In this document: piece after piece, positions 18,555-51,067 of the stretch
Layout of the letters: every line of letters starts with the position of its first letter
How positions within the stretch are numbered: position 1 is the first letter of the stretch
Source: Thalia democratica
Lineage: Eukaryota
Direction: 5' to 3'
NCBI GenBank assembly: GCA_965202585.1
Contig: OZ241830.1
Location: forward strand, 31,930,001 to 31,994,000
Length of the DNA: 64,000 nucleotides
The notes under the pieces: model-generated
The model's input: the letters and a program-made list of their open reading frames with translations, nothing else
Database searches by the model: none
Told to the model about the DNA's origin: nothing
Made by a program: the position numbers and the translations under genes

Positions 18555-19613
18555 CTAAATAATTTTTTCACGCAAATACCTAGCAAACTTTGAAAACTTC
18601 TCATAGTCAACACCAGATGGTTCTATTTCAATAAGAAATCTCGGTTTGACCAAGCTATCATCTGCAACATACTCGTCTACCAAACTGAGACCCGGTATGT
18701 TTTTGTGATATCTTCGTTCGGTGTCTGCTTTCATTTTACTGTCTGGACTGTCCTGATGCATGTGTTTGCAAAACGGGTGTTTTGGCGCTGCGTAGTTATC
18801 ACTCAGCTTGTGGTAGCTCTCATACTTTTCAATTTTTAACCTCTTCGTTTTAGAAACTTCGTTTACAAAAACGTATGTTTCAATGGAGTTGCTCCTGCAA
18901 AAAGTTTCAATCCAGTTATTTAGAGTTTTCCTTATCGAGTACATCACAGCTATGTCTATCGACTCTGTCATATAAACTCCCCTTCCAAAGCACCCGTAAG
19001 GCGAATTTTTGTAACCTTTGCTCAAAATCTTTTTGGTGCATTCCAAGCTGGTGCCGTGCAGCATCATGTAGTTGTCGAACTTATAATCGTCGGAATCGAA
19101 GCCGTCGCAATTTACCTTGTAAACTTTCGCATGTTTCAGGTCAACAAATGAATCCGGTTCTTCGCAACGTGCTTGTTCCAAGTATTGCTTTATCAAGGCG
19201 TATTCACTAGGGTTTGTTTGTGAGTCAATAGGCATCAGTGTAAATTTTTGAGCTGTTTCATCATCCTCTTGCTGATATTTTGCTAATACATTGTCAACAG
19301 ATACTGCATTCTTTATAAACTTTGAACATTCAAAAGGTTTTAAAGTAGGTTTGAGTTTTGCAGCATCTTTTTTCTTATTATCTTTTCTTTTGCGGCAGCG
19401 TCTATTTCTTTGCTGAGCAGGAAGCATTTCACTCCTTTGTTTACTCCTGTTTTTGTCAACTCCTTTTACCTGTTTTTTTACTGGTGCAGAATTGCTCTTG
19501 CCTCTGCATATCTCTCTTTTTCTTAGTTTATTACGAACATAACTTTGAGCTGAGGCATAATCGTCACCACGTTTTTCAGCTCTAATTGTAGTTTTCTTGT
19601 TTTTATCAGCACC
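18555..19613 (-). CDS. PARP-like ADP-ribosyltransferase, catalytic domain with basic N-tail, paralog 1
   Basis: Motifs LHGT, FGRGVY, VMYS, FVNEV and VDEYV..KPRFLIE match the PARP H-Y-E signature. The frame stays open and homologous to paralog 2 for 62 codons upstream of the ATG at 19427, back to an acceptor-like tttcttttcaaag|GGT at 19613. The true start is uncertain. Confidence 0.8.
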   Translation of the reverse strand, partial: GADKNKKTTIRAEKRGDDYASAQSYVRNKLRKREICRGKSNSAPVKKQVKGVDKNRSKQRSEMLPAQQRNRRCRKRKDNKKKDAAKLKPTLKPFECSKFIKNAVSVDNVLAKYQQEDDETAQKFTLMPIDSQTNPSEYALIKQYLEQARCEEPDSFVDLKHAKVYKVNCDGFDSDDYKFDNYMMLHGTSLECTKKILSKGYKNSPYGCFGRGVYMTESIDIAVMYSIRKTLNNWIETFCRSNSIETYVFVNEVSKTKRLKIEKYESYHKLSDNYAAPKHPFCKHMHQDSPDSKMKADTERRYHKNIPGLSLVDEYVADDSLVKPRFLIEIEPSGVDYEKFSKFARYLREKII

Positions 19614-20186
19614 CTTTGAAAAGAAACTATTTGTTATTTTATAATTACGTCAAAGCATTTTACAGTCAGTAATTAAACTTAGTTTATGTTTTGTAATTAT
19701 CTATAATCTATATTTAAAACATTTTTATATCTTTAAAAAAGTTGTGAAACAAATTATTATTTCAAGTAATTAAAAAAAAAGTAAGTTAATGTATTATGAC
19801 ATTTAATTTAATTTCATCATAATGAAAATAGAATTTATTTAATTGACACGATAACTCCTTTTATCGGAGTTGAAAATTTTTGAGGCAAAAAGCAAGGCTG
19901 GTTGCAAACAATGACTTAGGTTCTTTTAAACTTATGAGAGCAATAAATTGTATGAACAAAAAGATGAAAAAAAGTATAATGATTGAATATTTAATAATAT
20001 AAAAGTTAAAGCAAAACAGTTTGAAAAAAATATATAACCAAAAAAAAACAAGTAGTGTTTAATACTAGGTTTTTATTTTCTGTTTTTTGTATCCAAAATT
20101 TAGTAATTTAAAGTAATTTTGTTAGAATATGTCAAGTTGATATAATATTTTAAACAGTTTGTCTTAAGAAAAACAGTGAGCTTAAA

Positions 20187-20509
20187 GGGAAACTGGTCTA
20201 AATAGCACGAAAAAAAAACTTCACGATGTTACTAAATTTGCAAAAGGGGACCAAATTGCAAGATAACAAAATGGCACAAGTAAACGAAATTGCACAAAGA
20301 AAATAAATAGAAACAAATATAATTAATTCATATAAAATTAAATGAAAAAAATAACTAGTGCAAAAATTACTTCATGCAAAAATATCTGCTCGTGCAAAAG
20401 TGTCTTATTGCAAAAATTACTCTTTGTTCAAAATTATCTTTGTGCAATTTTATCCTCTCGTGCAAAAGTAGACTCGTGCAATTTCGTGCTCTTGAGAAAT
20501 TTTCTCCCC
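20187..20509. mobile_element. Degenerate foldback/MITE with TGCACGA subterminal repeats
   Basis: Left end gggaaactggtctaaatagcacga followed by tgcac motifs; inverted cgtgcaa motifs at 20390-20490; no clear TSD. Confidence 0.5.
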
Positions 20510-21625
20510 TCATTTAATTTTGGAAATTACCCTTTTATAAAGTTCAAACTATAATAATTATAAGTCACTTTAAATGTATTGTTATAAGTTATTAAAAACG
20601 AGTCAAAATTTACTATTATTAAAATGAACCTGTAATGCATTGGTAATGCATCCCTGATATTAAATCTTGAATATCAAAATGAAGCTGTACAGCGAATCAT
20701 AATCAACAAATTGGTAATTTTAAATCACTTATAATTAAGTATATAACTGCTTTTTCATGATGCAATTTAAGTTGGGAAACAAACTAATTGTCTTATATAA
20801 CTGGCTGGCTTGCAGTCACTTCAGTGGTGTCAGTCTACTAATCCTGTATTTGTGTTTTGGTAAGTGGAATCAGTTCACTTATAGTTTATTTGATTTGAAC
20901 TTGTTGGTCTTTGGAACTCAAGTTCTTTATTTGGATTTGAGCTGTTACATTGGAACCCAGCAGTTAGTTTCCAGTTCAAAATAAAATAACATTTTTAACT
21001 GCTTATTTATACAATTTTATTAGGGCTAATTTAAACTATTCACTGCTAAGTTTTTATATTCGGCTAATTTGTCAATTTTTTAGATTTGTAATTATTGTAT
21101 TGATTTAAAAAATTATTAAATTCATTATATTAAATTGCCTTGTTTTGATTTTATTTATTAACTGACTCAAAAGTATACCGAAAATGGACCCTAATTATAT
21201 AACTTCCTCTAGACTAGATGTAGCAAAGCTACCCTCTAGAAAACCTTCCCCACAGTTTAGCCTGGCCTCTAATGTGTCCACAACTCCGAGGCACTCCCCC
21301 GTAAATTACAGACTTTAAATACTTTAAAACAACTTCAGTCAGCCAGTTCGTGTAGTAAGTCTGCGTACTAAGCTAAGTTTTTCTACATGTACATAGAAAA
21401 GGTCTAGGTTTCAGTTTTTCTTCGGTTATTTAGATATTTACATAGCTGAGCTGTAATTAATTAATGCGTACTTTTACCTAATTAAAGCTTGAAATTCGAG
21501 TCTTCAATTAGTGATAAAATGATCATTTTAATGCATTGGATCTTTAGCATCTGTTTTTTTTATCAGAAGGCTATAATGACTTAAATTTTGTAAGATATTT
21601 TGATTAACATTTTTAATTTTAGAGC

Positions 21626-22072
21626 AACTTGGCTTGGATGGATTTTTTTTAACTTTTTATTTTAAACTTTATTAATTAATTAATTCATAAACTTTAAAAC
21701 TTTTTTTTTTCGATTTCTATAAAATCTAAAAATCTATAAAAAAAAATTTTCGATTTTCGATTAAAATAAAAAATTAATAACATCCTAAAACTTAATTAAA
21801 TAAGTATGTTATTAAAAAAAAATTAACATAAGAATTTATTTTTGCAGAAAATTGTTGCAAAGTTAAAAAATGCTAAAAAACATTAAACTTTTAAAGGGGC
21901 CCCCACTACAAAAGTAAAACCCCAAATCGATAAAATTTATTGTGAAAAGCTAAGCAAAAGAACGTTCTTTAGAATAAAAAAAATTTCCAGTTAGCATTAA
22001 AGAAATTGAAAATAATTGGTTTTATAGTTTGGTTAGAAAAAAAATTACAAAAAAAGCCATCCAAGCCAAGTT
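21626..22072. mobile_element. MITE with 16-bp perfect TIR AACTTGGCTTGGATGG
   Basis: TIRs at 21626-21641 and 22057-22072. The right side reads ..CCAAG|TTAA. The TSD is not clean, so the superfamily is unassigned. Confidence 0.7.
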
Positions 22073-22083
22073 AACGCTTGTTT

Positions 22084-22395
22084 TTAATTTCCTCTTTTGC
22101 AGTGAATTGCATATTTTTTAGCAAAACGCTGTACAACTTTAATACTGTTAATTTCTTTTACCTGGTTTTTCACTTTAGCTGAAGCGTTGTTTCCTCTGTG
22201 TATTACTCTTTTCCGTAGTTTTTTACCAACATCATTAAAATGAGCTGAGGAATTATTGTAACCAGGTTTTTTAACTTTTATTGCGGTTTTCTTGTTTGTA
22301 CCAGCACCAACTTGGTTCTTGGTAGCGTCAGCTGCCAGTACTTTACTGTTGTCTGATATCTCTGAGTAACCCAAAAGACTTATTTTTGTACTCAT
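22084..22395 (-). pseudogene. 5'-only paralog of the PARP-like genes (N-terminal basic region, no catalytic domain); possibly exon 1 of paralog 1
   Basis: MSTKISLLGYSEISDNSKVLAADATK..GAGTNKK..VKNQVK aligns with the N-terminus of 48728-49873. The upstream 22396-22800 resembles 49874-50250. Confidence 0.7.
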
Positions 22396-22882
22396 GATTT
22401 AGTTATTGTTTATTACAACTTCAAAGTATCAATTATAATTTCACTATTTAAGTTTTAAGAGCTTTTCTTGCAAAATAAATCTTATGTTAAATTAGGGGTA
22501 TATGTTTTAATTTTAATTAAGCATTTTATTTATTTTTGCTGATTTTTCTATTGTTTTAGTTGCTAAATATTTTTTCCGGAATTAACTAGTCTAACAATAT
22601 TAAAATACTATTTCTGAAAGTTGTTTTATATTACCTCAATATTTACTTAACTCTCAATCTTTAACTTTAGCTTTGGCAAAACTAGAAATTTAAAGCACAC
22701 TAAAAAATTATTTATTTATAGTTAATTTGTTAACTTGTATTTGTAACAATTAAAAATGTTAAAACAATAATAATTAAAGTTTACAATTAAATGCATAAAA
22801 CATAATTAGTATTTAAAAAATTCAATCAAATACTTATTGAAAAAAATTAATATGATTAAAACTGCTACTAACTATCAAAATT

Positions 22883-23440
22883 GGGAACGGTTCTAAATTA
22901 CACGAAGACAAAATTGCACGAGAACTAAGTTCCACGAGGAAACGAAATTGCACGAAGATGATTATGCATCAAGGGTCAATTTTGCATGAGAGTAAAATAA
23001 CATAGATAAAAACTCAAAGAAAAAATATATATTAAAAAAAAAGCTATAGACCGAGGGTTAGGAGTAACAGTGATAGTAAAAAAAATATTAAAAAAATTAA
23101 ACTAAAAGAAAACTAAAAATTTAAAAATAGAAAAAAAAAGCTTACCGACTGAGGGTAATGGTAAGGAATAAAAGTTACAATATAAAAAAAACTAAATTAA
23201 AAAAAAAATTCTTAAATTTTCGGAGAAACTGAAACAAAAAACTTAATCAGTGTAAAAATGTCTGTGTGCAACACTTTCAACTTGTTTAAAAGTGTCTTAG
23301 TGCAATAGTGACCCTTCATGAAAAAGTATTTTCGTGCAATTGTGTGCCCTCGTGCAAATTAGTCTTTGTGTAAAAGTATATTCGTGAAATTCTGTCTCCT
23401 CGTGCAATTTTGTACGCTCGTGTAAGTTAGACAGCTACCC
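22883..23440. mobile_element. Foldback/Mutator-like MITE with TGCACGA repeats
   Basis: Ends are gggaacggttctaaattacacga and (reverse complement) gggtagctgtctaacttacacga. Flanks atcaaaatt and attttaatt match 6/9. Confidence 0.65.
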
Positions 23441-23810
23441 ATTTTAATTACTTTATTATTTTTTGTAGCCATACACTACAATACTACGTACTTCTTATAA
23501 TTATTTTTAATGAAGTTTTCTAACTTAAACCTTATTGTACACTATCTCTAATGTAATATTTAGTTATTTGATATCATTAGTTTTAAACAAATTTAAATAC
23601 TTCTAATTAGTTTTACAGCTCTAGTAAATAAAGGAACATAAAGTTCAGTTTGTTGAAATTACGCTTTTTTTGAATTTTTTTCTAAAAAAGAAGTAAAAAC
23701 TTTTTTAAATTTCAAACTAAAATTTAACAATGTGAAATTTGCTAATCTAATATTATGTATTAGAAAAGTACTGTTAAACATAAAAAGATTGAAAGTAATA
23801 ATTAGAATAG

Positions 23811-24195
23811 GTGCACGACAAATAGTATTCTGACAACTGTAATTTTAAGATTTCAAACTTTTTCATAAATGGACAAAACTTATAAAAATATTTTATTATA
23901 AAATAAAAAAGTATGTAAGTCTAATAAATACCTTCTAACAATTCTACTTTTAGTTAAAAATTTCTGACTTTATTTAGAGATATAGCTAGAATAAATTACA
24001 AATTATACTTTGTTTTACATTTTTTTCTTTTAATATTTCTTATATTCAGTGTTTTTTATATCTAAATATTAATTGATCTACTACAACTTTTTTTAAATAC
24101 TTAATACTTTTTGAGATATTATATATAAAGCATTTTTTTTAAGAATCAGAGTTGTCGTATTTTTAATTGTCAGAATCTGAATTGTGTAATAACCA
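23811..24195. mobile_element. Degenerate short foldback of the ..GACAA-repeat family
   Basis: Left ggtgcacgacaaatagtattctgacaac resembles the 62729 terminus; inverted gttgtc/ttgtcagaat motifs at 24150-24190. Confidence 0.4.
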
Positions 24196-24829
24196 ATTGG
24201 AATTTTTTTACACTGAAACTTTTCTTAAGTTGACTTTTTAAAATTTCATTAACAATAAACTGAAAGCTTTTAAACATTAATACTTTTTACAGAGTAATAA
24301 ACTTCAATTCATTACATAGCAATGAATAAATCAAATAAAAAACTTTTGATTCAAAATATGAACTTTTTTACAACTTTCTGATAACTAATTTTTTTAGGTA
24401 TGCTTAATTTTTATTTAAAAGACTCATTGAAACCGATTATTTTATAAACATAAAGTGACATACTTATAAATCTGAATTGGCTGTTTGTACATAAGTTGAG
24501 CACCTATTAAAAATCGATTAGCAAGTAATAACATATCAAAAATCATTAAAATACTACTCTTTTAGATAGTTTTAGATAATCAACAACTTACTACGGCAAA
24601 TATCAAATCTATAAGACTAAAATCTGTGACTCACATAACATTAAAGGTACACTTATACTGCAATTAAAAATAACACAATAAACAATTATAAATAATATAA
24701 ATAAATTAAACTAGTTAATTAATATTAATAAAAATAAAGATAATTTTTAATTAGAGCTACAAAAATTAACTTTTAATATAAAATCAAAATAAAATAAACT
24801 GTTAAAACGTACTATTAAGATTGCAGCAT

Positions 24830-25750
24830 TTGAAAAACAGACATTAATATAACGAAAAAAATCTATTGAAAGTCATACCTATGGCCTCAATAATATTTCC
24901 AATATGTTTCAGCATTTTACAGGCCTTTGCTGTCTTAGATACAAAGATATGTTGTCTTTGTTTTCATTGTATTATTAAGATTAAAGAGACATACATAAAT
25001 TTAATATGATTCATTTTACATAAATTAATCACAGTTTTTTGTGACTTTGTGGACTAAATATTTCAGTTCAACTTTTACTTTGCGTACTAGTTTTGTCAGT
25101 TCTCTTTTGATTTTTTAGATTAATTTTTTTTTAATTTTTTGTGACTTTATTGAATCAAACTGATACTATATCCTTTGTGACTTATTTGACTTAAATTATT
25201 TCTCCTACTGTTTGTCTTTTAAGGCTTTGAATTGTGTTTTTGTACTTTTTGATTTACTTTGGCTAAATATTTTTACCTACTTTTTGTGACTAAAAAACTT
25301 GTGTTGTGCCAATACCTCTTATTGTTTGGTTTATAATTTCCCTCTTGCATTATATGACCCCTAATTGCCTTAAGTTTTTATCGAGCCCCTATGTCTTTCT
25401 AATTTGATTATACAAACAGGGTTTTAAAAACTAGGCAGGTGGAAAATATGAGTATTGCTTCTTAAAAGTTCAATACAATCTATATTGTAGAATTTCTCTA
25501 AATGTGCTGTTAGTTAATGCAACAATAAAAAAAAATAATAAAATTTGAAAATGTTAGATAACTATTTGACAAATGTTTAAAAAAAAATTAATACAAGTGA
25601 AATCTTTTGGTTAAGATACTTTCTTGGTTTTGTTCAACTGTTACCTAAAGACTGTTGGTTCTTTATTTGGAGCGCAAAGTAACCCACAGAAAATTGAGGG
25701 TATGGTTGTAGTATATTGTACGACCAAACTATAAAGCATAATGCATATCA
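24830..25750. repeat. Block A/B repeat, copy 2
   Basis: Colinear with 6950-7900. Confidence 0.6.
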
Positions 25751-28700
25751 ATTTTAGTTCAACTGACACTAAGTAATACTTAAAATTAATTTATATAAAA
25801 TTAAGCATGTCAATGAATGAAAATACTGTATTTAAGAACAATTGCAAACACTAACAAATGTATTAAGAACATAATAATTAATAAAATACCTTAAATATGA
25901 CCAAAACGTTTTCACAAAAATTAAATCTAAATTAAATGTGTTTGATGAATGTATAAAATCAAACTAAATTTGACTGCTTAAAGTTTAAATCAAAAATCTA
26001 ATTATAAGAGTTAACGTTGTTAAAATAACTATAAATGAAACAACAAAAACAAATAAAAAGGGTTCTAATGTAGTATACACTGTACAGCCACACTAGAAAC
26101 CATAATTAATTTTTTACTAAATTTATACTTAATGCTGATACTAAATAGTACTTAAGGCTACTTTATATAAAACTAAGCATGACAATGAACTAACATGATA
26201 TGTAAAAGAATAATTGAAAATACTAACAAACATATTAAGAACACTATGCTATAAAAAATACTATAAGTGTGATTAAAACTTTTACACAAGGTTTAATTTA
26301 ACAGAAATATACTCTAAGAATGTACAAAACCAAATTAGATATAATCACTTGAATGTATAACAAAATATTTAAGAAAAGTTACAATGCTAAAAAAATTTTT
26401 CATACAACTTAAGAAAACAATATATCTGTCTATTCTTGAATATCATAATTACTGCAGCAGTTATGGCCAGTATGACTACAGATCCAACTGTTGAGTGTTT
26501 ATATGTGGCTGTAATATAGTGATGCAAACTTGCATCAGTAAACTCGTGACTGCTCTTTATATTCTCCTTATCCAAACTTGCACGAGTATAACAAGTAGCC
26601 TTGTAACTTAACATGTTAAAAGTTCCCGGCTTTTCTGATTTTTCATTGGTTTTATTAAATATTCCAGGTTTACCAAGTTTTTTAGGTTTCTAGGTTTTTT
26701 GGCAATGCTGTATAAATAATAGGAACTATTAAATATTTAAAGAACTCAATAGTAATTATGTATTGTTTAAAATACTCTTAACACTTAAATGATAAACATA
26801 AATAAATAAAAAACATGCAATTCTTAAAAAAGTCTAAAAATAACTTGATTCTAGCAATATTTCTCTATACAAGTTTTAGGTCCTATAAACTTACGTTCTG
26901 GCTGACTGATTTCGTGACACTCAACTTTTAAAAACTTAACACTCATTCAGTTGATGAGAGTATGAAAGATACAATCCATTACAAATTAAACGTTTAAGAT
27001 ACTTTTTGGGAAATGTAAGTTGTAAACAACTGAAAATTGTACAAAATAATGATAAAAAAACATGCGACACAAGCATTTGTAAAACATGGTATAGGACTGT
27101 TAAGTGTTGAAGAATAAATGCTTAAATCTTGCGCAAAATAGTGAACTGCTTCCTATTTCGAATAGACTTTCGTTAATGATTCATTTTTACGACTTCATTG
27201 TAAGTTATAATTAAAAGCTAGTTAAAGATGTTGTGAAAGTGCTAATTTATTCAACGTTTTTAATCTTTTGCTTGTTTGTGTGGGATTCAGTCTTTAAAAT
27301 TACATATAATTTTTCTTTTGGAAAAGCAAGCATTTAAAAGTTACAGAGTATAAAAAGTAAACTTTTATAAATGCTAAGAATACCGTTTTATAAACTATGT
27401 TTAAATTGATCAATATTTACTAGTCTAAAATCAGTAACTTCTCTATCTTTATAACATACTTCTTTTCTCAAAAGCAATAGTATAAAAATTTCTTTAGATA
27501 TATTAAAAGTTTTTAAAATAAATTTTATCTTACGCCAACTTACACTTTTTTTACTTTAATGTTTTATGATGTAAATACTTAGGTTTTTTAAGTTTTTCTT
27601 AAAGCCATTTCCAGAAGTTATATAATAAATAAACTTTGTTTAAGTTTCTGAAACAAAAATATAACAATGATACTTTTGAAAGTACCAAAATGACAGTGCG
27701 TTAGTAGTAAATTTCCGTAAATTCGTAGTATGATTTTAAGTAGCCTACTGCACTAAACCTTAACTAATTTGTGCATCTTTAAATTATCTACATTTTGCTA
27801 TAAAATTCATTTGTTTTTGTTAGAAAGTTTAAAGATTTTAATTAACAAGCAAAACTGCTAAAGTAAGTAAATTTAGAGTTTAAAAAGTTTCCTTGAGTAG
27901 TTAAAACTTGTTTTCTTCTTTTTTTTTAGAGGTTCTACGAGATCCAAAACAAAAACAGTGCAACCACCCATACATTTTACATACTTGTATGGAAATCTAA
28001 CATAAGTATAAACTGCTACACACTGAAATTCTAAAAAGGTAAGCTAGTATAGCAGTTAGCTTAAAAAACTTGATTCTGAATATGTTTGCAAGTCATAAAC
28101 TATAATTTAACAAAGGTTTACTAGATGTTAATGATAGAATTAAATGGAAAGAAAAAAGCAAAAAATGTTGATAAATTTTTATGGAGTGTTTTTATTTCAA
28201 TTTGTATTCTAACTTTAATATTATTGCTAAGTTTTAAACTAAAGAATAGCTATTTTTTAACTATAGAATATGTTATGTGAACAACAGTTGTTAGATTTGC
28301 TAAGAATAAGCCGAAAAAACTACTCGAGCGTGATACTTTAACTTTAAAATGAGTGATAAGAATTCTTTGTTTCAGGATTTTAAGAAACGCTGCATGAAGT
28401 TAAATGCTGCATAAAGTTAAAACTTTTAATTTGCGTAGGTTATTTTAATTCTTATATTTTATAATTTTGACTAAAGTTCTTCGTTATATACCAAGGATAA
28501 AAAATCCAGAAACTTAAAAGACCAGAAATACTTCCTTTGAAGCAACAAGATAAATTTCAATATTAATCTTTACATACTGCTAGTTAAACTTATTTCATTG
28601 TTAGCGGTGTTTATTTTTGAGGGCTTATTGTTGGTAGTTTTATTGACTATGTGTAAGCAGAGCTCAATCGGTCTGAGTTGATGATTGTTTTTTCTATATT

Positions 28701-30228: not shown

Positions 30229-32579
30229 TTAAGTTTTTGGTAATTTTATGCAAGAAAAATGATAAAAAAGTTTCTTCACTTCACATGGAATTTTTAACCA
30301 TTCTTCTTTTTGAACATCATATTTGTGGACAATAGATGAAACCGAAGTTTCAATTGCGAAAAAACTATCACCCACTGCTATAGCAGTAAAAATTCCGCGA
30401 GGAATTGGGGATTTTACAGCTACAAACTTATTAACAACATTGTCTAGAACTTCGCACCTATGATGACCGTTTCCCCCAACTGCAAACAGCCTGTTGTTAA
30501 CATCAACTAAACTTTGGCCTGCTTTACTCGATAACATGTTTGGCATTTGTTTCCAAGTGTTTCCAAACGCATCGTAAGACTCCGTAGTGTTTTGAGTTTT
30601 GTAGTCTACACCCCTACCACCAGAGATTACAATATTTCCCTTGAAATTTGTGCAAGCTGCAAAACATCGTACCTGGTTCATTCCGGCAACTTCCTTCCAT
30701 GAGCAGTTTTTTGTGTCAAATTGAAAGCAAGAACTAAATTTATTTGTAACGTTCTCAAATCTTGTCATACCTCCGAGAATATATATTTTATGCATAAATG
30801 CACACGCACTAAAACCAAAACGACCATCAAACATGTCAGTCACTTTGCTCCACGTGTTAGTGTGAGGAGAATATTTGTCTACAGACATTATCCATTCAAG
30901 GTTTGAATCATAGCCTCCAAAAAAATAAACTTCACCTTTTAAACTAACTGCTGTAGAAGAGCTTCGACCATTTTTTGTGCAAGAAATACTACTTGAAGTT
31001 TTTAAGCTATTGACATCTAAATGTCTAATATTTTCATCTAAGCTGCTTGAAATTCTTTCTCTACCCCCAAAAGTAAATACTACAAAATCATCCTGCTTAC
31101 AATATCTACGTCTTTGAATCAATCTACAATGCTCTTTTCTGCTTTGTAATGCTTCATATAATATATCAGTACATTCGTGTACTTCTGAAAATGATGATTG
31201 TTGTTCTAGAAGATATTTTAAAGCATCATCTGTTAACAAATTAAGCCGGACTTTCAATAACAAGTCTTTTGCAAATTTGCTGCGTTCTTCAAAACTGTGG
31301 CTTACCCATCTTTCAGCAGCAAGATAAACTTCAAGTTCTGATGTGATTACCAATTCTGAACTTGTAAGTATTTTTGAAACTTGGATTATGTCTAACTCTA
31401 AAAAGCTTTTAGTTTCAACGAGAGTTGTAAACCAACGCTCTATGTAGCTTAAAATTGTCTTAATAAAACTTAATAGGTTAAAAGCTTTTGTAAGTTGTAG
31501 ATAAGTTATAACATTCTGATAAGTCATGTTTTTTTCAAAAAGTATGCACAACTCATTTTGCACATTTTCCGTAAGAAAAAGTTTATTCAATCGTAAAAAG
31601 CAACATAGTTTATCTTTGTCTAGTTTCCCGTCAGCTGAAAATTGAAATTAGTTAGACCACTTTTTGTTATAACTAAGCGATAAAATTAACTTAGTTTATT
31701 TTAGGAATGAAAAAAATGTATGCAGCCTTAAACATAAAAGATGCATTTGAAGCTAAAAAAATTTATTGCTGAAAAGTGTTTAAACGGTAAGTAACTATAA
31801 AAAAATAAATCTAGTTTTTGTACATAATTAGAAAGAACTTGTTTTCTTGTGTTTAAAACTTATTTTTGTTTGTTAAACTAGTTCAGAATTTATGTAAGTT
31901 TAAATAAAACACGTGTTTACTACAGAAAATATATAAACAATTGCTCAAAAATAAGTAATTTTGTATTATTTTTATCAAAATCACTCTTTATGGAAACTAT
32001 CTGTAAAAAATTCTCATATACAAAAACATATTTAGTCAGCAAAAGAGGTAAAAAATGGACTTTTGTATAAATAATTCGAGAATTTATGCGAGCTTTGATT
32101 TAAAAAAAAAATTGAAATATTTTTCAAAACTGTCGCATTTAAACTTACATAACTTCTGTAATAAACAGAAAAAAAAAAAACAGTTTTGAACTATTCTAAT
32201 TAGCAATAAAGTAAATTACCGCTATAACATATAAAAAACTGATTATATATCAAAAAAATATTTATGGTTTAACACAGTTAGTTAATTGAAAAGATTATTT
32301 TAACTCAAATAACTATATTAGTTAAACATTTTACAAAGTTGTATAAAAACTTTGTTAGAAAATCAATAGCATTTACATACCTTCTTGAGCATAAGTAATA
32401 AACTTCTTTAAATTTTTCTCTTCAGACATTTTTGCAATATTTTCAATACATTTATTTACAAAGCTAACATCCATAAAAGTTTTATAATTTGAACTGTAGT
32501 CTGGATGAGGATCTTTAAGTTCTATTTTGCTTTTCTTTTGGTGAATTTCTACTAACATGGTTTTGTTTTGTTGTTTCAT
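30229..32579 (-). CDS. Two-exon kelch-like protein: truncated/degenerate BTB, BACK, Kelch repeats (exon 1 32381-32579, exon 2 30229-31634)
   Basis: BACK motif SELEVYLAAERWV..RLNLL and Kelch GG/Y/W repeats (YFFGGY, YILGG, VISGG, FAVGG). Donor GAAG|GTATGT at 32381/32380 and acceptor TTTTCAG|CT at 31635/31634 are both phase 1 and join the two ORFs in frame across a 746-bp intron. Confidence 0.85.
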
Positions 32580-37830: not shown

Positions 37831-38639
37831 AATGTTTTTTGTTCTAAAGAGAAGATCTGCTGAATTCAAGGAGCGTGGCTCTAGTCAAGGATAACCATCT
37901 AAATAAGTTTGTTTGATTACATAATTTCTTCAAGTAAAGATTTATTTTTCTTTGAACTTCCAATATTAACATGTATAAAACTTGATTAAACATCAAGCTT
38001 TTGCCTACTAAGTTTTCAAAATTAAAGTTACGACAATTTAGTATATTAAAAAATTGTTGACGTGGCCACATCTTAGATAGTTTTTTATATTTAAAAAACT
38101 CAGGTAGACAAAAACAATGTTTTTTGAGTTATGTCTAACGAACGTTTTAAACTTTTATAAATTTACTTTGGGTAATTAATTTATCTTCTTCTATAGTTTA
38201 GCTAAACAGACCTTCAAGACCTTTTTTTTTCTGTATAGCCTTTTGAGCAATGGTATTCTAACTTTGTTTTAAGAACTTGAACTTTCATAAAACTGTTGGA
38301 ATTTGCAATTAGGGTTTTATTAAATAATAAGTTATTATAAATGATTTGTTATTGTATATTTAGTAGTATTATTATTTTTCGAGTTTATTGTGCGAAGATG
38401 GACTCAGGCATTAAAACCTGAGCCGCATAAACATTACGATTAAAAAAAAGAAAAAAACAAATTACATTCAATGAAAATTCAAATCTAAACATAACATAGT
38501 AAAAAAATTACAAACAAATAGTCGTGTATGATAAATAATAACTTAGTATGCACGAAAAACAAAACGGAATAAGTTCTCATATAAAAACTTATGCATAGTC
38601 TATAAAAGATTACACATTTACAAAAATTATATTTAACAA

Positions 38640-39950: not shown

Positions 39951-40619
39951 AAGAGGTGTGATATTTTTTGAATAGTTTTTTTTTTCTTGGTTTTCTAAAA
40001 TATCTACTATTTGGTGCTGTAAGAAACTTGCATTAAGTAAACTTGTTACGAAACTATAATTAATTTATTGCAATCAAAACAAATTTAATTTTTGAAATTT
40101 CAAAAGAAAAAAAATAATACATATGATGTTACTAAATGTTTAAAACTTTTAAAACTAACTATCTAAAACCTTTTAGTTTATCTAAAGTTTTTTTTTTTCA
40201 ATTGGTTAACAAGCTACCTTTTTATGTTTCCTTTACAAAAAAATGTTTACATAATAAAAAAGTCATTATTTATGTAGAGTGTTAAATATTTTAGGTGCAC
40301 AAAAGTATTGTTATACTTTAGTTTAAAAATAGAACTGTATCTGTCTTTTAATCAAGTTTTTCACGATTCTTTTGAATATACTTGTAATACAACTTAATTT
40401 ATCATAAACCTTACACTAACTTAAATTCATACAATGTTTTGTTTTTAACTCTAGAGCAAATAAAAGTATCTATTATGATTGAAATTACAATTTAACAAGG
40501 TATACTAAACTTGTATTTTATTGCTAAATTTATTCAAGTTTTAAACTTTAATAACTTTTGTAGTTATTTAACATACTAGATATGTAACTTAGTAGACCTT
40601 TCATTGTTACATTCTAGTG

Positions 40620-43600
40620 CAGGGGTCGGCAAACTGCGGCCCGCGGGCCAAATGCGGCCCTCGAAGGGTAAATCTGCGGCCCGCGAGCACGTTAATTTTT
40701 TGAATGGAATGCGGCCCGCGGAAGAAAATTTTGTGGCCCGCGAGCATGTAAGTGTGGCCCGCTGAGCAAAAAAAAAAATTTAAGTTAAACTTATTTTGGT
40801 TTTTTGTTTAATTTCATTATTTTCGTTTTAAGTCCCTGTTTAACATTTTAAAAGAATCAAAAAACTTTACAGTGTCAGCTTAAAAATGTAAAAAAGACAG
40901 ATTAGCATTCCAGCAGGTTTTTTTCTCAGTTTCATCATAACTTTCTTTTTACAACAGCAAGTTTAGGTATTTTTTACATGTTTTTTAAAACTAATAATCT
41001 TCTGTAGACGTTTTATTACGAAAAGTTATATTTGATTGTGCACTAAAACATTTAAAATAAGATATAAGTAAGTAAAATTGTTTATTTTATATAGATTTTT
41101 ATACATTTTGATGTTTTTATAAGTTTTTTTAGCACTTTAAACTAATCCCTATGCACACAAATGTGCAAAGATGTTCATATTTTAATCGGCATACTGACAA
41201 TTCCCGACCACGATTATTCCCACTCGCGCACAATTACCACTCAAAAATGTTTTTAACTTTTATTATTTATTCCTTTATTTTTTAATATTTTGTTTTTTTT
41301 TTTATTTAATAATAATCTATGTTTTACCATCACTGTTACCCCTAACCCTTGGTTAGTAAGCGGTTCTCGGATTTGATTGAGTAGGAAATGATTGCCGGTT
41401 GGAAATGAGCGGTTCCCATTTTAAACCACATTTTATTTAATACTTAAATTAGATCAAGTTTAGTTAGTTCATAATTTTCTAAAATTATTGTTTATACATG
41501 TAGTATCTAGGTGTGTAAAGACACATTTAAAAGAATACATGATATAAATTAAAATAGTTTTTAATAGGTATACATTTTCATTTTTCAAACAATGTTTTTT
41601 TGACAAACTAAGTAAATTTGTAAGCACTAATATACACAGTTACTGTTTTTTTGAACTACCTATTTAATACAAACTAAATTTAGGGATGGTAAATTTATAA
41701 GGTTTGTATATTGTTAATCAAAATAGCTCAAATTCAAGCAAATAAACAACTAAAAATTTCCACACACTTAAACTATGACTATCTGTAGATTTTGAATCTC
41801 ATTTCATTTAGTCATTTTTCAGTTTTTGGTTTGAATAAATGTTTGTATACTAAAATATTAGGCTAGTTTTTGGTTAATAGGATGACTTTTTTTGCTTTAT
41901 GAGTGGCAAATTAAATTTATGATGTATGTTTTGTTCAATTTACAGTGTTAGTTTGAATTGTAATATATATTAAACTTCAAGTCTTGCAGCTGATAAAATT
42001 TGAAATATTATTTATATAATGGTACACATATAGGTGTGAACAATTAGTGTTGCTAAAAAACTTGAATCCTGGAAAAGCTTTGAATTTGAAAATTATGTTT
42101 AAAAATTCTTTAAAAACCTTGAAACTGATAATTTGTGAAAAATACTGGAATTTTAAACATCTTTTACGTGTAAAGTATGAAATTTCGATTTGACACAACA
42201 AATTTACTGTATAGATACTTTTTTAAACACATTAAAAGTAGTTTTACAGTATTAATTTAGTACTGCTATATTACTAAAGACAGTTTTTTTATTAAATGTA
42301 ATTTAATTTTGTACCAAAAAAAAGAAGCAGAAAACTATACTTTCAAAAACTTTATGTAAGTGCATTGCATATTTGCTTTTAAAACGCCTTTACCTATTGT
42401 TGTGCATTGGAATTAAACTTAGAAACTTTTCTAAAATATCAAAGTCAGTAAATACACCTCTAATAAAAACTCTCAGAAGAGCAATATTTGTTCTACCAGT
42501 TCTCTTATCTTAACAGATTGATTAAAGTTCTAATTTTATTTATTTTGCTTTATTACCTTTAGCAATTTACTAAACACTACTTCTTGTTGTCATTGAAGAA
42601 ATAAACAAAAAAATACAAACGCCTACATAAATTCTTAAAAAAGTTTTTAATTCTCAACGGTATCTTCTTTTTAGTAATTATTTTTGATACTTTATAACTT
42701 GCCTTAACAGTTTTTTTCTGATCAGTCTGTAGAAACTAAATATAACCATTTGCTTTATTGAAACTGACTATAGCTATTTTTTATTTCTCGCAATAACTCT
42801 TAACTAACGTTTTTTAGTTTTTATAGCTCGTTTTTCTTTTTACATTTACTCTTTATATAAAACATCTTTATTGCAGATAAGGAATTGTTATAATTTTCAA
42901 AAAAAAGTTAAGTTTTTCTACTTTTTAATGGCTTAATAAATTTTTAAACATTGTTAAAAATGTTTAGGAAACGTAACTGTCGATTTAAGCTGACTTAAGA
43001 TATTATTTTTGCTATATATTTAATTATCTGTTAATAAACTTTGTTATTTCTTTATTTTTGACTTTATTTTAAAAAGGGTTGCCAAACATACAGTCTAGTT
43101 TCAAAACTTAATAAAATTCAAACTAGGTTAAAGTTGTTTGAGACATTTAAAAGAAACTCAGGTAAACTTTTATTTCTAACACTTTAAATAAATAATCGAA
43201 TTTTCAGAACAGTTTTTATGACTGTAGTGTAATTTACTAATTTTAATTTTTCTGGTCTACTTATACATTGTGTACTTTTTATACTGAAGATATTTTAGTT
43301 AGGTGTCTGAGCTTGGTTAATTGCAAGTTTTTTCACTTTTCTAACGTGGAAACCCTGTTAAAAGCTTTTTAAATTACTAATAAGGTACTACATTAGAGTA
43401 TTCGAGCATTAATTATATTAAAAAAAGTACATAGTTTATTAAGACTTAAGTATACTCGTCAATGTAAATTTTACTCCAATAAATTATTTGAATTAAAAAA
43501 GGCATTCTATGTGTACATTCTAAAATATCATCAAATTAATAAAGTGAACAAAAGTAAAACTTTCTTTAATGTGACTAAAACTAAAATCAAAAGATTATTC

Positions 43601-43688
43601 AAATATCACTAAAACTAAAACTGCGGCCCGCGAAGATTTTGGAAACTTGAAATTTGGCCCGCGAGCACCAATTGCCTGCCGACCCCTG
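40620..43688. mobile_element. Non-autonomous hAT (Charlie-like) element, 3069 bp
   Basis: 12-bp TIR CAGGGGTCGGCA; perfect 8-bp TSD TTCTAGTG; multiple subterminal GGCCCGCG motifs; no transposase ORF. Confidence 0.92.
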
Positions 43689-44073
43689 TTCTAGTGTTAC
43701 ATGTTAACAACGATTCTTTTTGATATCAAAATAAAATAAAAGCTAGTTCGTTATATAATGTTCTATTAAACTACAATTTTATACATAAGAACGATAATGT
43801 AAGTAATTTACAAACTTTATTATAAAGTATATTTAATCGAGCAGTTAGTTGAACTTTTCTTAATAATCTAAAATACTTGTAATTAAGAATGTAAAGTTAA
43901 GTAACAATTTTTTTAATTTATAATTTCATTTAAGTTAAGATACACAAGCCTATTTTGAGTTTAACAAAAAACTAAACATTGTAGATATAACCACATAATT
44001 TATTGTAAGTAACGTGGACAATATATTGAAATAATTGTTTAAACCTAACATTTGAAACATGACCTATTCTTAC

Positions 44074-44571
44074 TTATGAGTTGAAAGTATGTGAAAAAGT
44101 CACAACCACAACAAAGATCAACTCTTGAATATAACGCGACACTTCACTTTACCAATCACATGATTAGCATCCAGCCATAGATGTCCCTCTCCTTACAAAC
44201 CTCTTTCATCTTTATCGCTGTTGTCCCCTTTTGTGAACAGCTTCACTTTTCCATTAATTTCGTATATTCCAATGACCCTGCGAACAATCGGGGTGTCTGT
44301 TCTAAACAAAATGTCGTCATTGACTTGAATTTTATCCCCTCGTGATTTGTCAAAATGAGAGCGTCTCCTGCATTAAAATAACGCTCGATGCTTTCACCGC
44401 TGACATTGTGATTGGAAAATAAAGACCAGTGACAGACTTGACTCCTTTAAAAAACATCATTACAAGTACAATTATTATCAAGTATTTTAACGCTTGGTAG
44501 CAAATATCCCGCTTGGTCATATTTTTGAAGTTCTTAAAACTTATTTCTAACTGATTTGTTGCAAACTCCAT
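44074..44571 (-). pseudogene. SEC11: Intronless SEC11-like signal peptidase catalytic subunit pseudogene
   Basis: Three frames together read MTKRDICYQALK..KGV..TG..PI / VSGESIERYFNAGDALILTN / TPIVRRV..FTKGDN..DERGL*GEGHLWL..VIGK. This matches SEC11 KRQ.YYQ, SGSMEP.F.RGD, PIVHR, TKGDNN.VDDRGLY. There are two -1 frameshifts, a TAA at 44193-44195, and His to Arg at 44280-44282. Confidence 0.85.
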
Positions 44572-45599
44572 TTTTATTTATAAATATGAAAGAAAACCCT
44601 TAAATAAAAGAAATAAACTTATTACTCAATATTTAAATTAATATTTGTATATTGATTTGTATATTAATTAAACAATGACTTTTTATATATAAATATTTTA
44701 GAAATATATTTACTGTTCTAATTAAGTGTTTTGTTATAGTAAAATGTTTTATTTTTATATTTATAATTCTTAAGGTTACTAAATGATAATTTTATTTAAT
44801 CCCTACTAATTTCAACTATAACTTTTTTAATTATACTTTAATAGAGCAACCTAATTCACTACTATATAGCATCAAAAATTTAATAACAAGTTTATACCAA
44901 TTTAATAACCTATATAAACTTGAAGTTTAATACAAAATTTTACGTTAGTTGTAGTAAGAGTAACTGAGAAAAATATAAGCAGGAATACTTTACTAATTCA
45001 TAAAAATAATATAATGGTTTAAAATATATAACAACATAAATATTAAAGTTATAAAAAAGTTATTAAAGAAAAAACTTAACTTTAGATCAAATATTCATAA
45101 AAGACTTGACTTTTAGAAATAAAAAACGTTAACCTGAAGCTAACTCAGTTTTTAACTTATTAAAGAAGCTAAAAAATACACACGTTTAATTAGTATCCCA
45201 CACATAACCTAAGAAACAAAAATCTTTCAAAATTTGAAATCACTTGAGCATAAATGAAAAAAAGATTTAATTTTTGTAAGACTGAAATAGATATTTCTAC
45301 GTAATAAGTTTTAAATAAGCTAAAATAATCTATAAGTAGTAGTAGTAATGTCAATAAACTAAAAACACATTTTCTTTTTTTTTTTTGACTAACTTGATAA
45401 GAGCATTTATTAAGTAAAATATAAACCTACCTCATGTACATTTTCAACTGGTATACTTGTGCATATCTTAGATGTTGAGTTGTGAATGTAAAGAGATAGG
45501 GATAAGGTATAAAAAAAACTTAGCTGCAATAAAAGACTGATACGACATCAACAAATGTCTAGTTTTTAAAACTAAAACTAAACACAAAACAATTCAACT

Positions 45600-46370
45600 A
45601 AATAATTTGTGTTTAGTACACTAAACTAGAACAAATTAAACTATTTTTTTGTTGATTGAACTCTAGACAAGTCAGGGTTGTTGGTTATATTTCATTAAGT
45701 GTGTCACTCTTTGAGCTAAAATGGAACAGAATAATTATAAAAAGAGTTTAATGAAAACTAGTTTAACTTATTTTCAAAAGCAAAGCTTATCTGTGTTTAG
45801 ATGTTGTTATAGTCTTAAAGTGTTTATATATTCATTGTTAAAAAAATACTAGTAAAACTAAATAATAAAACATTGAGTTTAAAAACAAATAAGCTATTTT
45901 TCCTTCATTTTTCAGGGATATTAATTCATCAAAGAAACAAGTTAACACACGCCAATGATGGCTTTTTGCAAAAGCCTGCTATAAAAAATATAAGTATACT
46001 ACAGAGCGACAATTTTAAATGGGAAACAAGCAATTAACTGAAAAGCAGTTGCTTAATTTTTTTTCAAAATCATATACTATCCCTTGAAAAAGATACCTGG
46101 ATAATTATTGGTCTAGAATGTAGTAACTTAATTACAAATATATATTTTTGAACTTTTATTAGTTTTATTATCAGCTTTAACAAAGTTGCTAATTTAAGAG
46201 TTAAAATTCTTTATACAAAATTAGTAATTATGTTATGTAAAGCACAGTTACCAGAATTACTATGTGCAAATCCTCGTAAGTTACTTAATCATTAGGTTTT
46301 AAGTCAATAAAACAAAAAATATAACATTCAGTAATCAGAGTTATATACTTCTGGAATTTAGTATACGTTG
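45600..46370 (+). repeat. Block C repeat, copy 3
   Basis: Aligns with 360-1190; the plus frame reads LCKAQLPELLCANPRK. Confidence 0.65.
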
Positions 46371-47119
46371 TACAAGTAATAAAAAATATAATTTGATTGA
46401 GTTATTTTAATGACTTTATTTCATACTTTAAATTAAAGTGCTTTAGATCAAACCCTGGAGAAAATGTCCGAAAACTTAAAAGACTGAAACTATCATGGAC
46501 AATTTTAATCCTGAATGAGAGTTTTTTGCTTAAAAGTCAATAGGATAAATGGCAGGTTTAGTTGTTACATCTTGTAATTATTTTTTTTCATTGTAGTTAG
46601 TGTTTCTACTCTCGTTTTGTAGGGACGATTACTAGTGGTGTAATGGAATAGAAATTAGCAGGTCTGAATTTAACTGAAATGGTAGTTTTTTATATTACAA
46701 AACCTAATACTACGGTTTGATCTTCAATGACATCGTGATTAAAGTAGTGGAAACTCACTTCTTTATTTCAAAAAATGTTTAATGTTGTTTCTTCTTTAGG
46801 AGGTATAGAGACAATGGCGTGAAAACATCATAAGGTTTTTATACTTCTTTAATACATACAACTCAGTTTGTCAAACTTTAAGTAAAGTATAACATTTTAT
46901 GTTTTGGTTTTAAGAAAACAAATAAAGAGATCCCAACTACTGGAGGAGAAATAATGAATTTATTCTTACAAGAACTTGTTTTACAAACTAAAAACAGTAT
47001 ACTATACTGAAGTAAAACAAAATATAAAGTAATTTTGAATATAATAAATATAATAATAATAAAAAATATTTCATTACACTCTGAATTTTCAGTGGTTATA
47101 AACAGGTAAATATTTTATT

Positions 47120-48403
47120 GGGTGGGTGTCACTTTTGCACGAGCGTCACTTTTGCACGAGCGTCACTTTTGCACGAAGGGTCACTTTAGCACGGAGAGTC
47201 ACTAATGCACGGTGTCACTTTTACACGAAGAGACACTTTTGCACGATCAACACTTCAGCACGAGGGGTCATTTTTCCAAGTGTCACTTTCGCACGGTTTA
47301 TACTTTCACGGATATGCTTATGAACTGCGAAAACTTTAAACAATCTGCTAATTTTGAACCGAGTTTCACTTTTGCACGCTTCTAATTTTTATTTTCCCAA
47401 ATATAAATTTAAATAAATTGTTTTTTTTTTCAACTTAAATAATGTTTGCTTTTAAACGCAATTTGCTTTTACTCTACTAGTGATAAGTCCTTTTTCAATG
47501 TGTTTAATGATTATTCATCTGGCCAGTCTATTGTTAATGTCCTTGAAGCGTTAAGTTTTTATTTTTGTTGTTAGTCAATTCATTCAAATTCTTGATGTTA
47601 ATTGTTCTACATAAAAGCGTAAATAAGTATAAGTTCGTGGCTTAAATTTTGCTTTTTATGTTAACCTATTAATTTTGTATCAAGGTATGTTTTTATCTTT
47701 GTTTTAATAAATAAACTTTTTGTGTTAATTTTATTCTTTCTGTATGTGTCTTTAAGTTAAAGTGGACTATGTTTTGATGCCTAGGTCCATCATATGGACA
47801 ATAAACTTGTAATCGTTTAGTAAAATATATAAAAAGTCATTGTTGTTAATAATATATTAAAATTCAAAATAAACTAGAACAATTTACTTCCACTTAAAGT
47901 ATTTTTTTCTCTTAGTTTCTAAACAAATTATTTTTTTGTCCGTGGTATAAATCTTTTATAAGTAATTTTTCTTCTATCTTTTCATTAGTTTGTTTCTAAC
48001 ATTAACTTTTACTGTTCAATATTTTAAATCTTTCATTTTTTGCCTTTAATATAAAAATAGTATAAAATTTTAGTTTTCAGTTTCTTTTTATGGTACAGAT
48101 TAAGTACTAGCAAAAAAAACTTTTAATCGGCCTGCATGCAAAAGTGATGTTCTGTGCAAAAAAGTCATCGTGCCAAAATGTCGCTGTGCAAAAATGTCAC
48201 CGTAAAATATGACGTTGTTAAAAAGTATCTTTGTGCAATATACTGCGGTAAAAATTGTCATCGTGAAAAAATGTTGCCGTAAAAAAAATGACCCTGCGTG
48301 CAAAAGTGACGCCGTGCAAAAGTGACCCTCCCAGCAAAAGAGTCGCCGTGCAAAAATGTCCCCTCGTGCAAAAGTGATGCTCGTGCAAAAGTGACCCGTT
48401 CCC
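47120..48403. mobile_element. Foldback/Mutator-like element with 16-18 bp subterminal tandem repeats
   Basis: Inverted arrays of gtcacttttgcacgagc at 47128-47295 and 48130-48397; GGG termini; 9-bp TSD tattttatt / tattttctt (8/9). Confidence 0.85.
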
Positions 48404-48727
48404 TATTTTCTTAGCTAGTACTTTACAACTAAACTGTTAATGTTAAAGAACTATAAAAAAACGAAATCAACCATTTCCGCCTAGTTAACAAAACCACCAT
48501 TGATAAGTCATAAAAATAAAGAGTAACTATATTAATAACAAAAGATAATTTTAAATGATTTTATATAAATAAGAAAATGAAATTACTTTAATGAAAAAAC
48601 TTATAAGTACTATCTAACAAAATTATTTATAGCAGCTGCGTATATTAATAAATATTTATAAAGTACTCTAAATTGAAAATAACAGTCATATTATCGTTTA
48701 AAATTTATTTCGTACAAATTACGTTAA

Positions 48728-49873
48728 CTAAATAATTTTTTCACGCAAAAACTTGTTAAAGTTCAAATACTTCTTATAGTCAACGCCAGACGGTTCTATT
48801 ACAATGAGAAATCTCGGTTTTACCAAGCTGGCATCTGCAACATATTCATCCACCAAACTGAGACCCGGTATCTTTCTGTTATATCTTCCTTCGGTGTCTA
48901 CTTTCATTTTCCTGTCTGGACTGTCCTGATGCATGTGTTTGCAAAACGGGTGTTTCGGCGCTGCGCAGGTATTACCGAGCCTGTGGTAGCTCTCATACTT
49001 TTCAGTCTTCAACCTCCTCGATTCAGAGACTTGGTTGACAAAAATGTATGTTATGATTGGTTTACAAAAAGGTTGATTCCAGTTATTTAGAGTTTTCCTT
49101 ATCGAGTACATCACAGCTGTGTCTAACGACTCCGTCATGTAAACTCCCCTCCCAAAGCACCCGTAAGCCGAATTTTTGTAACCTTCATTCAAAATCTTTC
49201 TGCTGCATTCGAGGCTGGTGCCGTGAAGCATCATGTAATTGCCGAACTTATAGTCGTCGGAGTCAAAGTCGTCGCAATTTACCATATAAACTTTTGCATG
49301 TTTCAAATTAACAAATGACTCCGGTTCTTCGCAACATGCTTGTTGCAAGTATTGCTTTAACAAGGCAAGCTTACTAAAACTTTTGAGTGTATCGAAAGGC
49401 ATCAGTGTAAACTTTTGAACTGTTCCATCATTTTGTTGCTGATATTTTGCAGCTACATTGTCAGCAGATACCGCATTCTGTGTGAATTTTGAACAACCTA
49501 AAGGTATCAAAGTTGGTTTGAATTTTGCAGCACTTTTTCCTTTATTGATTTTTCCTCCGCGGCGATGTCTGTATTTCTGTTTAGTAATACGCGTCTCACT
49601 CCGCTTTTCACTCCTGTTTTTGTCATTTCTTTTTACCTGATTTTTTACTGGAGCTGAACCGCTGTTTTCATGGCATATTTTTACTTGCTTTAGTTTGTTA
49701 AGAACATCGTCGACTTGAGCTGAGGAATTTTCGTCACAAAGTTTTTTAGCTCTTACTGCAATTTTCTTATTTGTATCAGCACCAACTTTCCTCTTCTTTG
49801 TAGCATCAGCTGCACACGTTTTACTGTTGTCTAATACTTCAGAGTAATCCATTACACTTATTTTAATACTCAT
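48728..49873 (-). CDS. PARP-like ADP-ribosyltransferase, catalytic domain with K/R-rich N-tail, paralog 2 (381 aa)
   Basis: Uninterrupted ATG-to-TAG ORF. LHGT / FGRGVY / VDEYV give the H-Y-E triad. It is colinear with paralog 1. Confidence 0.88.
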   Translation of the reverse strand: MSIKISVMDYSEVLDNSKTCAADATKKRKVGADTNKKIAVRAKKLCDENSSAQVDDVLNKLKQVKICHENSGSAPVKNQVKRNDKNRSEKRSETRITKQKYRHRRGGKINKGKSAAKFKPTLIPLGCSKFTQNAVSADNVAAKYQQQNDGTVQKFTLMPFDTLKSFSKLALLKQYLQQACCEEPESFVNLKHAKVYMVNCDDFDSDDYKFGNYMMLHGTSLECSRKILNEGYKNSAYGCFGRGVYMTESLDTAVMYSIRKTLNNWNQPFCKPIITYIFVNQVSESRRLKTEKYESYHRLGNTCAAPKHPFCKHMHQDSPDRKMKVDTEGRYNRKIPGLSLVDEYVADASLVKPRFLIVIEPSGVDYKKYLNFNKFLREKII

Positions 49874-50856: not shown

Positions 50857-51067
50857 GATTTTTTCTAAGTAATAGATAAAGCGATACATTAAACTAGCGA
50901 AATAAAATAATTTCAAAACAATTTGTTACAACTTAAACACAGACTTTAACTCTAAAAATCAACGAAATTGAACTTAAAATGACAAAAACATTTAAAAATT
51001 ACGATTAACTTAGTTAACTGTTAAATAAAAATGTTGAAAAAGACTACAATTTAAACGAACAAACTGT

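Follow-up and report, generated by a model that had tools for sequence, protein, structure and literature searches.

A young clade of stand-alone PARP-domain genes with a disordered basic N-terminal extension in Thalia democratica

Introduction

PARPs with the full His-Tyr-Glu (H-Y-E) triad are normally restrained by large regulatory modules, and the triad itself allows but does not prove chain elongation, PARP3 and PARP4 being mono-transferases that nevertheless carry it. In mono-transferases of the PARP14/PARP15 type the catalytic Glu is absent (H-Y-L), and macro or WWE domains are present. Bare PARP domains have been described in bacteria and viruses, where the PARP-domain-only proteins are single-copy and PARP1-like, usually keep H-Y-E and have been attributed to horizontal acquisition (Perina et al. 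2014, PMC4245714), and in the GCRV-induced gene 2 (Gig2) family of fish and amphibians, which is PARP-like without any other known domain, has expanded in a lineage-specific manner and has been reported only in non-amniote vertebrates (PMC3617106). Here we describe two paralogous genes for PARP-like proteins in a 64,000-nucleotide stretch of the Thalia democratica genome (contig OZ241830.1, positions 31,930,001 to 31,994,000; the whole stretch is hereafter called the window, and positions are counted from its first letter). One of them, copy 2, encodes a complete, competent-looking PARP catalytic domain without a known regulatory module and belongs to a subfamily that forms a young clade, duplicating and decaying in place by birth and death; the other, copy 1, is probably a decaying duplicate.

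This is an animal with well over a hundred bare catalytic domains, in which the branch represented in the window has acquired a basic, disordered tail, part of which also occurs in a ubiquitin-ligase family. What is distinctive to the window is this subfamily, with its N-terminal extension and a module that it has in common with RING genes. If active, the proteins would make up a natural collection of unregulated PARP domains in which to study what determines mono- versus poly-ADP-ribosylation, would provide a test of the mass expansion of ADP-ribosyltransferases as an immune strategy outside vertebrates, and would bear on the origin of the fish antiviral Gig2 genes; if silent, they would represent ordinary tandem duplication and decay.

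A complete PARP catalytic domain without known regulatory modules

Both copies are open reading frames (ORFs) on the minus strand (Table 1) that pass the gathering cut-off of PF00644 (39.4 and 27.0 bits against 26.7, the second copy clearing it narrowly), in agreement with the original prediction of a paralogue pair with a PARP catalytic domain. They are 72% identical at the amino-acid level over 287 aa and 82% identical at the DNA level over 1159 bp. No other Pfam domain scored above its cut-off in either copy, and the N-terminus searched alone likewise gave no match. The absence of WGR (PF05406), helical (PARP_reg; PF02877), zinc-finger, ankyrin and SAM modules, initially read from the letters alone, is upheld by these Pfam scans, which found none of them in either copy while detecting WGR and PARP_reg in the canonical PARPs of the same genome, and by the predicted disorder of the N-terminus.

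The H-Y-E triad that had been proposed is confirmed in register with canonical PARPs. It lies at H217/Y245/E343 in copy 2 (381 aa) and at H124/Y152/E252 in copy 1 (290 aa), coincides in position with the motifs LWHGS, GKGVYFA and NEYIVYD of the genome's own WGR-PARP_reg-PARP genes, and does not vary among 20 aligned relatives. Besides the catalytic Glu, the NAD+ site also retains its His, Gly, Tyr and Tyr residues. Across the wider stand-alone family described below, His and Tyr are each conserved in 131 of 132 sequences and Glu in 96 of 132, the Glu being invariant within the subfamily.

When the ADP-ribosyltransferase (ART) domain of copy 2 was modelled by AlphaFold2 (AF2) with 132 sequences, the model reached a predicted local distance difference test score (pLDDT) of 90.1 and a predicted template modelling score (pTM) of 0.90; the full-length AF2 model, made with 20 sequences, was poor (pLDDT 55). 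The domain model matches the PARP1 ART (792-1011) with Z 14.7 and a root-mean-square deviation of 3.4 A over 189 aligned residues, the 'constitutively active PARP-2' 5dsy, from which the helical domain (HD) has been deleted, with Z 14.6, and the tankyrases with Z 14.0-14.2. The extra C-terminal helix of copy 2, which lies beyond the ART fold, is also present in the sister clade (L011, P0013). Compared with the canonical PARPs of the genome, the D-loop has 6 residues fewer, and the second Ser of their SKS motif is replaced by Ala at a position that by our count we take to be PARP1 Ser904.

Relation to described ADP-ribosyltransferases

As regards PARP1 and PARP2, the whole fold superposes on the HD-deleted structures 5ds3 and 5dsy (Z 14.6-14.7, ~190 residues), and the H-Y-E triad, the second Tyr and the N-terminal beta-alpha-beta part are all shared. 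These two proteins are also the best sequence-profile matches of the family in the PDB (E 5.5e-14 to 1e-13). However, identity to them is only 12-14%, the family lacks WGR, PARP_reg, zinc-finger and BRCT domains, and it differs from them in the short D-loop and the Ala described above. In a profile-profile comparison, the canonical ART and the family aligned at 98.6% probability with 18% identity over 119 columns. The WGR and helical domains of the DNA-dependent PARPs (the PARP1/2/3 clade) are absent, and the ART domain groups separately from theirs in a FastTree phylogeny with limited outgroups. Unlike the tankyrases, the family has neither ankyrin nor SAM domains, and its N-terminus is disordered. 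PARP14/PARP15-type proteins resemble it in their compact catalytic domain and in a profile score near that of PARP1 and PARP2 (PARP15, E 2e-12, 50 bits), so that PARP2, PARP1 and PARP15 are about equal matches of the family profile among solved structures (E 5.5e-14 to 2e-12); in contrast to that type, the subfamily has an invariant Glu and no macro or WWE domain. The bacterial and viral PARP-only proteins are alike in having a bare PARP domain, usually with H-Y-E, whereas the present family is encoded by an animal in well over 100 copies and has no detected viral relatives.

The likeness to Gig2 is of a different kind. The His-Tyr core is 40-41% identical over 49-53 columns (hhalign 97.9-98.2%), the short D-loop and the Ala are found in both, and both are PARP-like families without other known domains that have expanded in a lineage-specific manner; Gig2 also matches this family, at 31-44 bits per unit, more strongly than it matches any solved PARP, none of which exceeds 27.7 bits with the Gig2 profile. 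On the other hand, the Gig2 unit is only ~150 aa long and lacks the N-terminal beta-alpha-beta part, and the Gig2-specific C-terminal half (HPLQ..W..YDTAW.PP.CGM..EE.CVWDP) could not be aligned with the family by hmmsearch or hhalign, with only a loose positional likeness visible by eye. We considered filing the family under Gig2 and rejected this, because the E value of 1e-40 breaks down into 3-4 repeated weak units of 31-44 bits each, no higher than for canonical PARP. Based on these profile comparisons with Gig2, the canonical ART and solved structures, the family is a distinct lineage, with the full-length fold of a PARP1-type ART and a His-Tyr core that is most Gig2-like.

A large stand-alone family and its young subfamily

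The genome holds at least 130-150 loci of this stand-alone PARP-domain family, since a protein search gave 138 matches from 871 candidates and a PF00644 search 150 from 851. Most family matches lie in tandem arrays as open frames of 200-240 aa in a single exon, about 19% of all matches carry stops, and the members inspected are bare ART domains with HGT, G[KR]GVY and DE[YF][VI]A motifs. Within this family, whose single-exon ART domains are about 210-240 aa long, the close subfamily, at 30-40% identity to other stand-alone members, is set apart by an added N-terminal extension of ~150 aa. A protein search of the genome placed it at ~9 loci, mostly within 0.36 Mb of one chromosome, of which four are intact: copy 2, the only structurally intact family member inside the window, and three genes (380, 411 and 411 aa; L004-L006) that lie 0.17-0.31 Mb from it along the chromosome. 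Damage is seen in copy 1, in a copy immediately preceding the window, in a locus with four stops on a different chromosome and in two loci on the unplaced contig C249.

In a FastTree phylogeny of 140 domains, the subfamily forms one clade (support 100) with a sister clade (99), nested in the stand-alone family (96-100), and the canonical PARPs of the genome form a separate group of their own (99-100). The six copies in this genome cluster weakly (82), apart from metagenome sequences. The small family of the original prediction is therefore not self-contained but a clade of ~9 loci inside a family of more than 100 genes, and the suggestion of an undescribed system finds no counterpart, there being no sign of a multi-gene system.

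Relatives outside this genome were sought in two protein collections. A word-indexed search of 5.8 billion proteins matched only unnamed metagenome proteins from ENA, Logan and JGI, and 1.84 billion representatives, scanned exhaustively with a profile, yielded 1464 hits, of which 270 were at E<=1e-10 and 63 at E<=1e-30, the nearest named ones being fish Gig2 proteins and a frog PARP-domain protein. No named close relative was found in these collections, in the AFDB clusters, which returned generic PARPs only (at most 17% identity), or in the literature searched, and IMG/VR (2.9 million viral contigs) contained no relative. With all close relatives being unnamed metagenome proteins, the claim of a lineage-specific family stands, and by the tree, the protein searches and the PDB profile search the genes fall inside no known orthogroup.

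Among the other PARP genes of the genome, L027 (C10:19794301-19795884) and L028 (C8:33482533-33484380) are canonical WGR-PARP_reg-PARP genes in single open frames of 528 and 616 aa, L030 and L032 are divergent PARP1-like open frames, and L035 gave no PDB match. L038 (C7:54.08 Mb), L039 (C2:53.02 Mb) and L040 (C1:94.55 Mb) are open frames of 577-625 aa that the family profile matches twice, first as a full ART domain and then as a partial, weaker second match.

Gene structure and decay

Copy 2 aligns with its paralogues and with metagenome relatives from its first Met (MSIKIS...) onward. Five upstream regions, including that of a metagenome orthologue, have an acceptor-like site, TTTTTTCAG, 26 nt ahead of the ATG; in copy 2 its AG is at 49901-49900, and an in-frame TGA separates it from the ATG, so that an upstream exon could only be non-coding and no upstream exon adds a canonical domain. 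The description of the gene as stripped down thus withstands the search for such exons, as the ATG and the residues that follow it are also conserved in paralogues and in a related organism. The Wnt genes present in the genome are ordinary multi-exon genes, and the intron-free state is therefore a property of the PARP family rather than of the genome.

The duplicated unit is only ~1.6 kb long, comprising the gene, ~380 bp upstream and ~95 bp downstream, with no shared terminal repeats, and most of the 31-kb span that takes in the two genes is unrelated intervening DNA. Copy 1 is homologous to copy 2 as far as 19613, the counterpart of 49783 (codon 31), and the family codons 1-30 are missing; the open frame of copy 1 reaches 19616 (364 aa), and out-of-frame ATGs precede its internal Met. 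An orphan 5' fragment sits 2.7 kb upstream of copy 1. Splicing of this piece (22084-22395) onto copy 1 was considered and is unsupported: the boundary at 19614 is acceptor-like, but the donor position reads GTTGGT. The 72-kb contig C249 (27000-32000 and 52500-59500; L025, L026) repeats both PARP regions in inverted orientation at 94-98% identity, together with the arrangement of the orphan 5' piece, and frameshifts interrupt its PARP copies. The contig represents either a haplotype that has diverged or a segmental duplication of recent origin.

The N-terminal extension and a module common to RING genes

The N-terminal 149 residues of copy 2 contain 34 K+R against 15 D+E and are predicted to be disordered (pLDDT <50). 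The K/R-rich tail originally predicted is thus basic and disordered, but it is more than low complexity, since residues 100-149 form a module homologous to an exon of a RING family (59% identity to the first exon, E 1e-12 by tblastn). Genome searches in both directions found this module of ~50 aa only in the contexts of the PARP subfamily and the RING family. In the latter, the first coding exon encodes 47 aa and ends at a GTAAGT donor, with the RING exon lying ~430 bp further on. Part of the module is duplicated in two paralogues and in one metagenome protein.

The RING-H2 family itself has nine copies, seven at C6:529340-905648, on the chromosome of the subfamily, and two at C10:37389346-37401281. 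Its first exon reads MGK.RRGGRNNKGK..KYKPILVPFESKFTQNAISA (examples at L022:2419-3562 and L023:2356-3575), and its second exon contains acidic NDVVGNFE.DP repeats and the RING finger. In P0115, a deep-branching subfamily member of 527 aa from a metagenome, an N-terminal extension of 295 aa, which contains an internal repeat (..RRTILFNEIYLMIEQDYE.. and ..RRSIIFNEVIFIIERDYE..), takes the place of the basic tail.

Selection and variation

Pooled dN/dS (the ratio of nonsynonymous to synonymous substitution rates) was estimated for each region of the protein (Table 1) by the Nei-Gojobori method (NG86), which is crude for a genome of ~27% GC but gives a clear contrast between regions: the ART domain is under purifying selection, and residues 1-99 drift about neutrally. 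The dS between paralogues, at 0.4-0.5, is close to that against the metagenome orthologue. In three DNA runs, all 12 of the listed indel variants fell outside the coding sequence (CDS) of copy 2.

Proposed function and competing explanations

Taken together, we consider it moderately probable that copy 2 encodes an active, non-autoinhibited ADP-ribosyltransferase with a complete ART domain and a basic tail, belonging to a birth-and-death clade whose likeliest role is in genetic conflict, with copy 1 as a decaying member. The product would be intracellular and would consist of a fast-evolving, disordered basic region of ~100 aa, the basic module of ~50 aa, the ART domain and the extra helix. 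By analogy with the HD-deleted constructs of PARP1 and PARP2, it is predicted to act without HD autoinhibition because the domain that gates these two enzymes is missing, in which case control would lie mainly in transcription and in targeting by the basic tail, which may direct the protein, plausibly to the nucleus or to nucleic acids. The turnover of copies and the relatedness of the His-Tyr core to that of the virus-induced Gig2 genes suggest that the most likely biology would be genetic conflict, be it antiviral, anti-transposon or stress-related.

Several observations weigh against this proposal. Broken copies outnumber intact ones in the subfamily; a 35-bp skip variant inside the copy 2 CDS appears in two runs of one sample; and the ART dN/dS of 0.24-0.57, itself obtained by the crude NG86 method, reflects no more than moderate constraint. 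The short D-loop and the Ala at the presumed Ser904 position could alter or weaken the use of NAD+. The role in defence, moreover, is a conjecture by analogy, and the activation of such PARP-like enzymes by nucleic acids, which the original prediction had also raised, is a conjecture too.

The constraint on the ART domain would also be compatible with active ADP-ribosyltransferases in a housekeeping or developmental role (chromatin, germline or stress signalling), with copy turnover reflecting neutral tandem duplication; the KKRK basic tail suggests a nuclear location, and other families in this genome are amplified in tandem, as seen in clustered Wnt exons and clustered RING genes. Enzymes of that sort, however, are rarely more than half broken, with about-neutral N-termini and species-specific clades, and no orthologue was present in the named proteomes searched, so that we regard such a role as unlikely. 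The damage to copy 1, L003, L008 and both C249 copies, along with the stops in about a fifth of the genome-wide family matches, could instead mean that the genes are silent or functionless relics of a past expansion, with frames that are open merely through youth. Yet the intact paralogues, for all their divergence at synonymous sites, maintain an ART dN/dS of 0.24-0.31 and an invariant triad, upstream motifs are conserved across species, and the 149-codon N-terminus is open in four copies of this genome and in several metagenome orthologues, even though ~8.5% of random codons would be stops at this base composition; this explanation therefore seems improbable. Least credible of all is that the genes come from, or are carried by, a mobile element or virus with which they have spread. 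They are intron-free and multicopy, and Gypsy-type long terminal repeat (LTR) elements lie 1-1.2 kb from both window copies, but the LTR element follows one copy and precedes the other, the duplicated unit is only ~1.6 kb long and has no shared terminal repeats, the copies are clustered locally rather than dispersed, and the viral contigs searched held no relative.

Beyond the preferred reading of an active enzyme in a birth-and-death clade, a more speculative proposal, which we hold to be doubtful, is that the stand-alone family may be the invertebrate counterpart of Gig2, nearer to the ancestral form in having the full ART fold and the Glu, and that the module of ~50 aa may be a common targeting or docking motif through which an ADP-ribosyltransferase and a ubiquitin ligase would meet on one substrate. 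Were the Gig2 part of this true, the origin of Gig2-type effectors would shift outside vertebrates.

Features of the window and neighbouring sequences

Table 1. Positions of the PARP-related features in the window, with pooled dN/dS by NG86 for regions of the protein.
Feature	Position	Strand	Evidence	Pooled dN/dS
Copy 2, intact single-exon CDS, 381 aa + stop	48728..49873	-	ORF; PF00644; full-length alignment including start Met with L004-L006, P0003 and P0004	
Copy 2 residues 1-99, disordered, polar, basic N-terminal region; KKRK motif at residue 26	49577..49873	-	pLDDT <50; composition; pooled dN/dS	1.28
Copy 2 residues 100-149, basic module RHRRGGK..FKPTLIP..CSKFTQNAVSAD, homologous to first coding exon of RING-H2 family	49427..49576	-	two-way genome searches; tblastn	0.66
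Copy 2 residues 150-365, complete ART (PARP catalytic) domain	48779..49426	-	AF2 model; structural match; triad alignment; pooled dN/dS	0.35
Copy 2 triad codons	H217 49223-49225; Y245 49139-49141; E343 48845-48847	-	alignment	
Copy 2 residues 366-381, C-terminal helix appended to ART fold	48731..48778	-	model helix 217-231 (domain numbering); alignment; tree	0.88 (few sites)
Copy 2 conserved upstream region with acceptor-like site TTTTTTCAG	49874..50250	-	alignment of five upstream regions; homology of 22151-22799 to 49625-50250	
Copy 1, 290-aa ORF starting at internal Met, ART domain intact	18555..19427	-	ORF; DNA homology to copy 2	
Orphan 5' piece: upstream region and codons 1-83 (ORF 22084-22395), then unrelated sequence	22084..22799	-	DNA homology	

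The window is AT-rich, with a GC content of 21-34%. The Gypsy-type LTR element is present in two copies, at 9978-17497 and 51062-58339, with a mutual identity of 81-86%; the first lies downstream of PARP copy 1 and the second upstream of copy 2. Their LTR pairs are 97% identical (9984-10633 with 16846-17494) and 99.4% identical (51068-51706 with 57699-58336), and each element contains a block of tandem repeats (11535-12235 and 52433-53416).

Three further regions of coding potential were seen, all on the minus strand. A 453-aa open frame at 30229-31590 encodes BACK and Kelch repeats, with no BTB domain in the same exon. The 224-aa ORF at 2838-3512 ends in a C-terminal RING finger that scores slightly below the Pfam cut-offs and bears a distant likeness to the RING-H2 family. 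Finally, two adjoining ORFs of 191 aa lie at 62816-63391 and 63420-63995, one with a weak PHD-finger match and with tandem repeats nearby (63377-63837).

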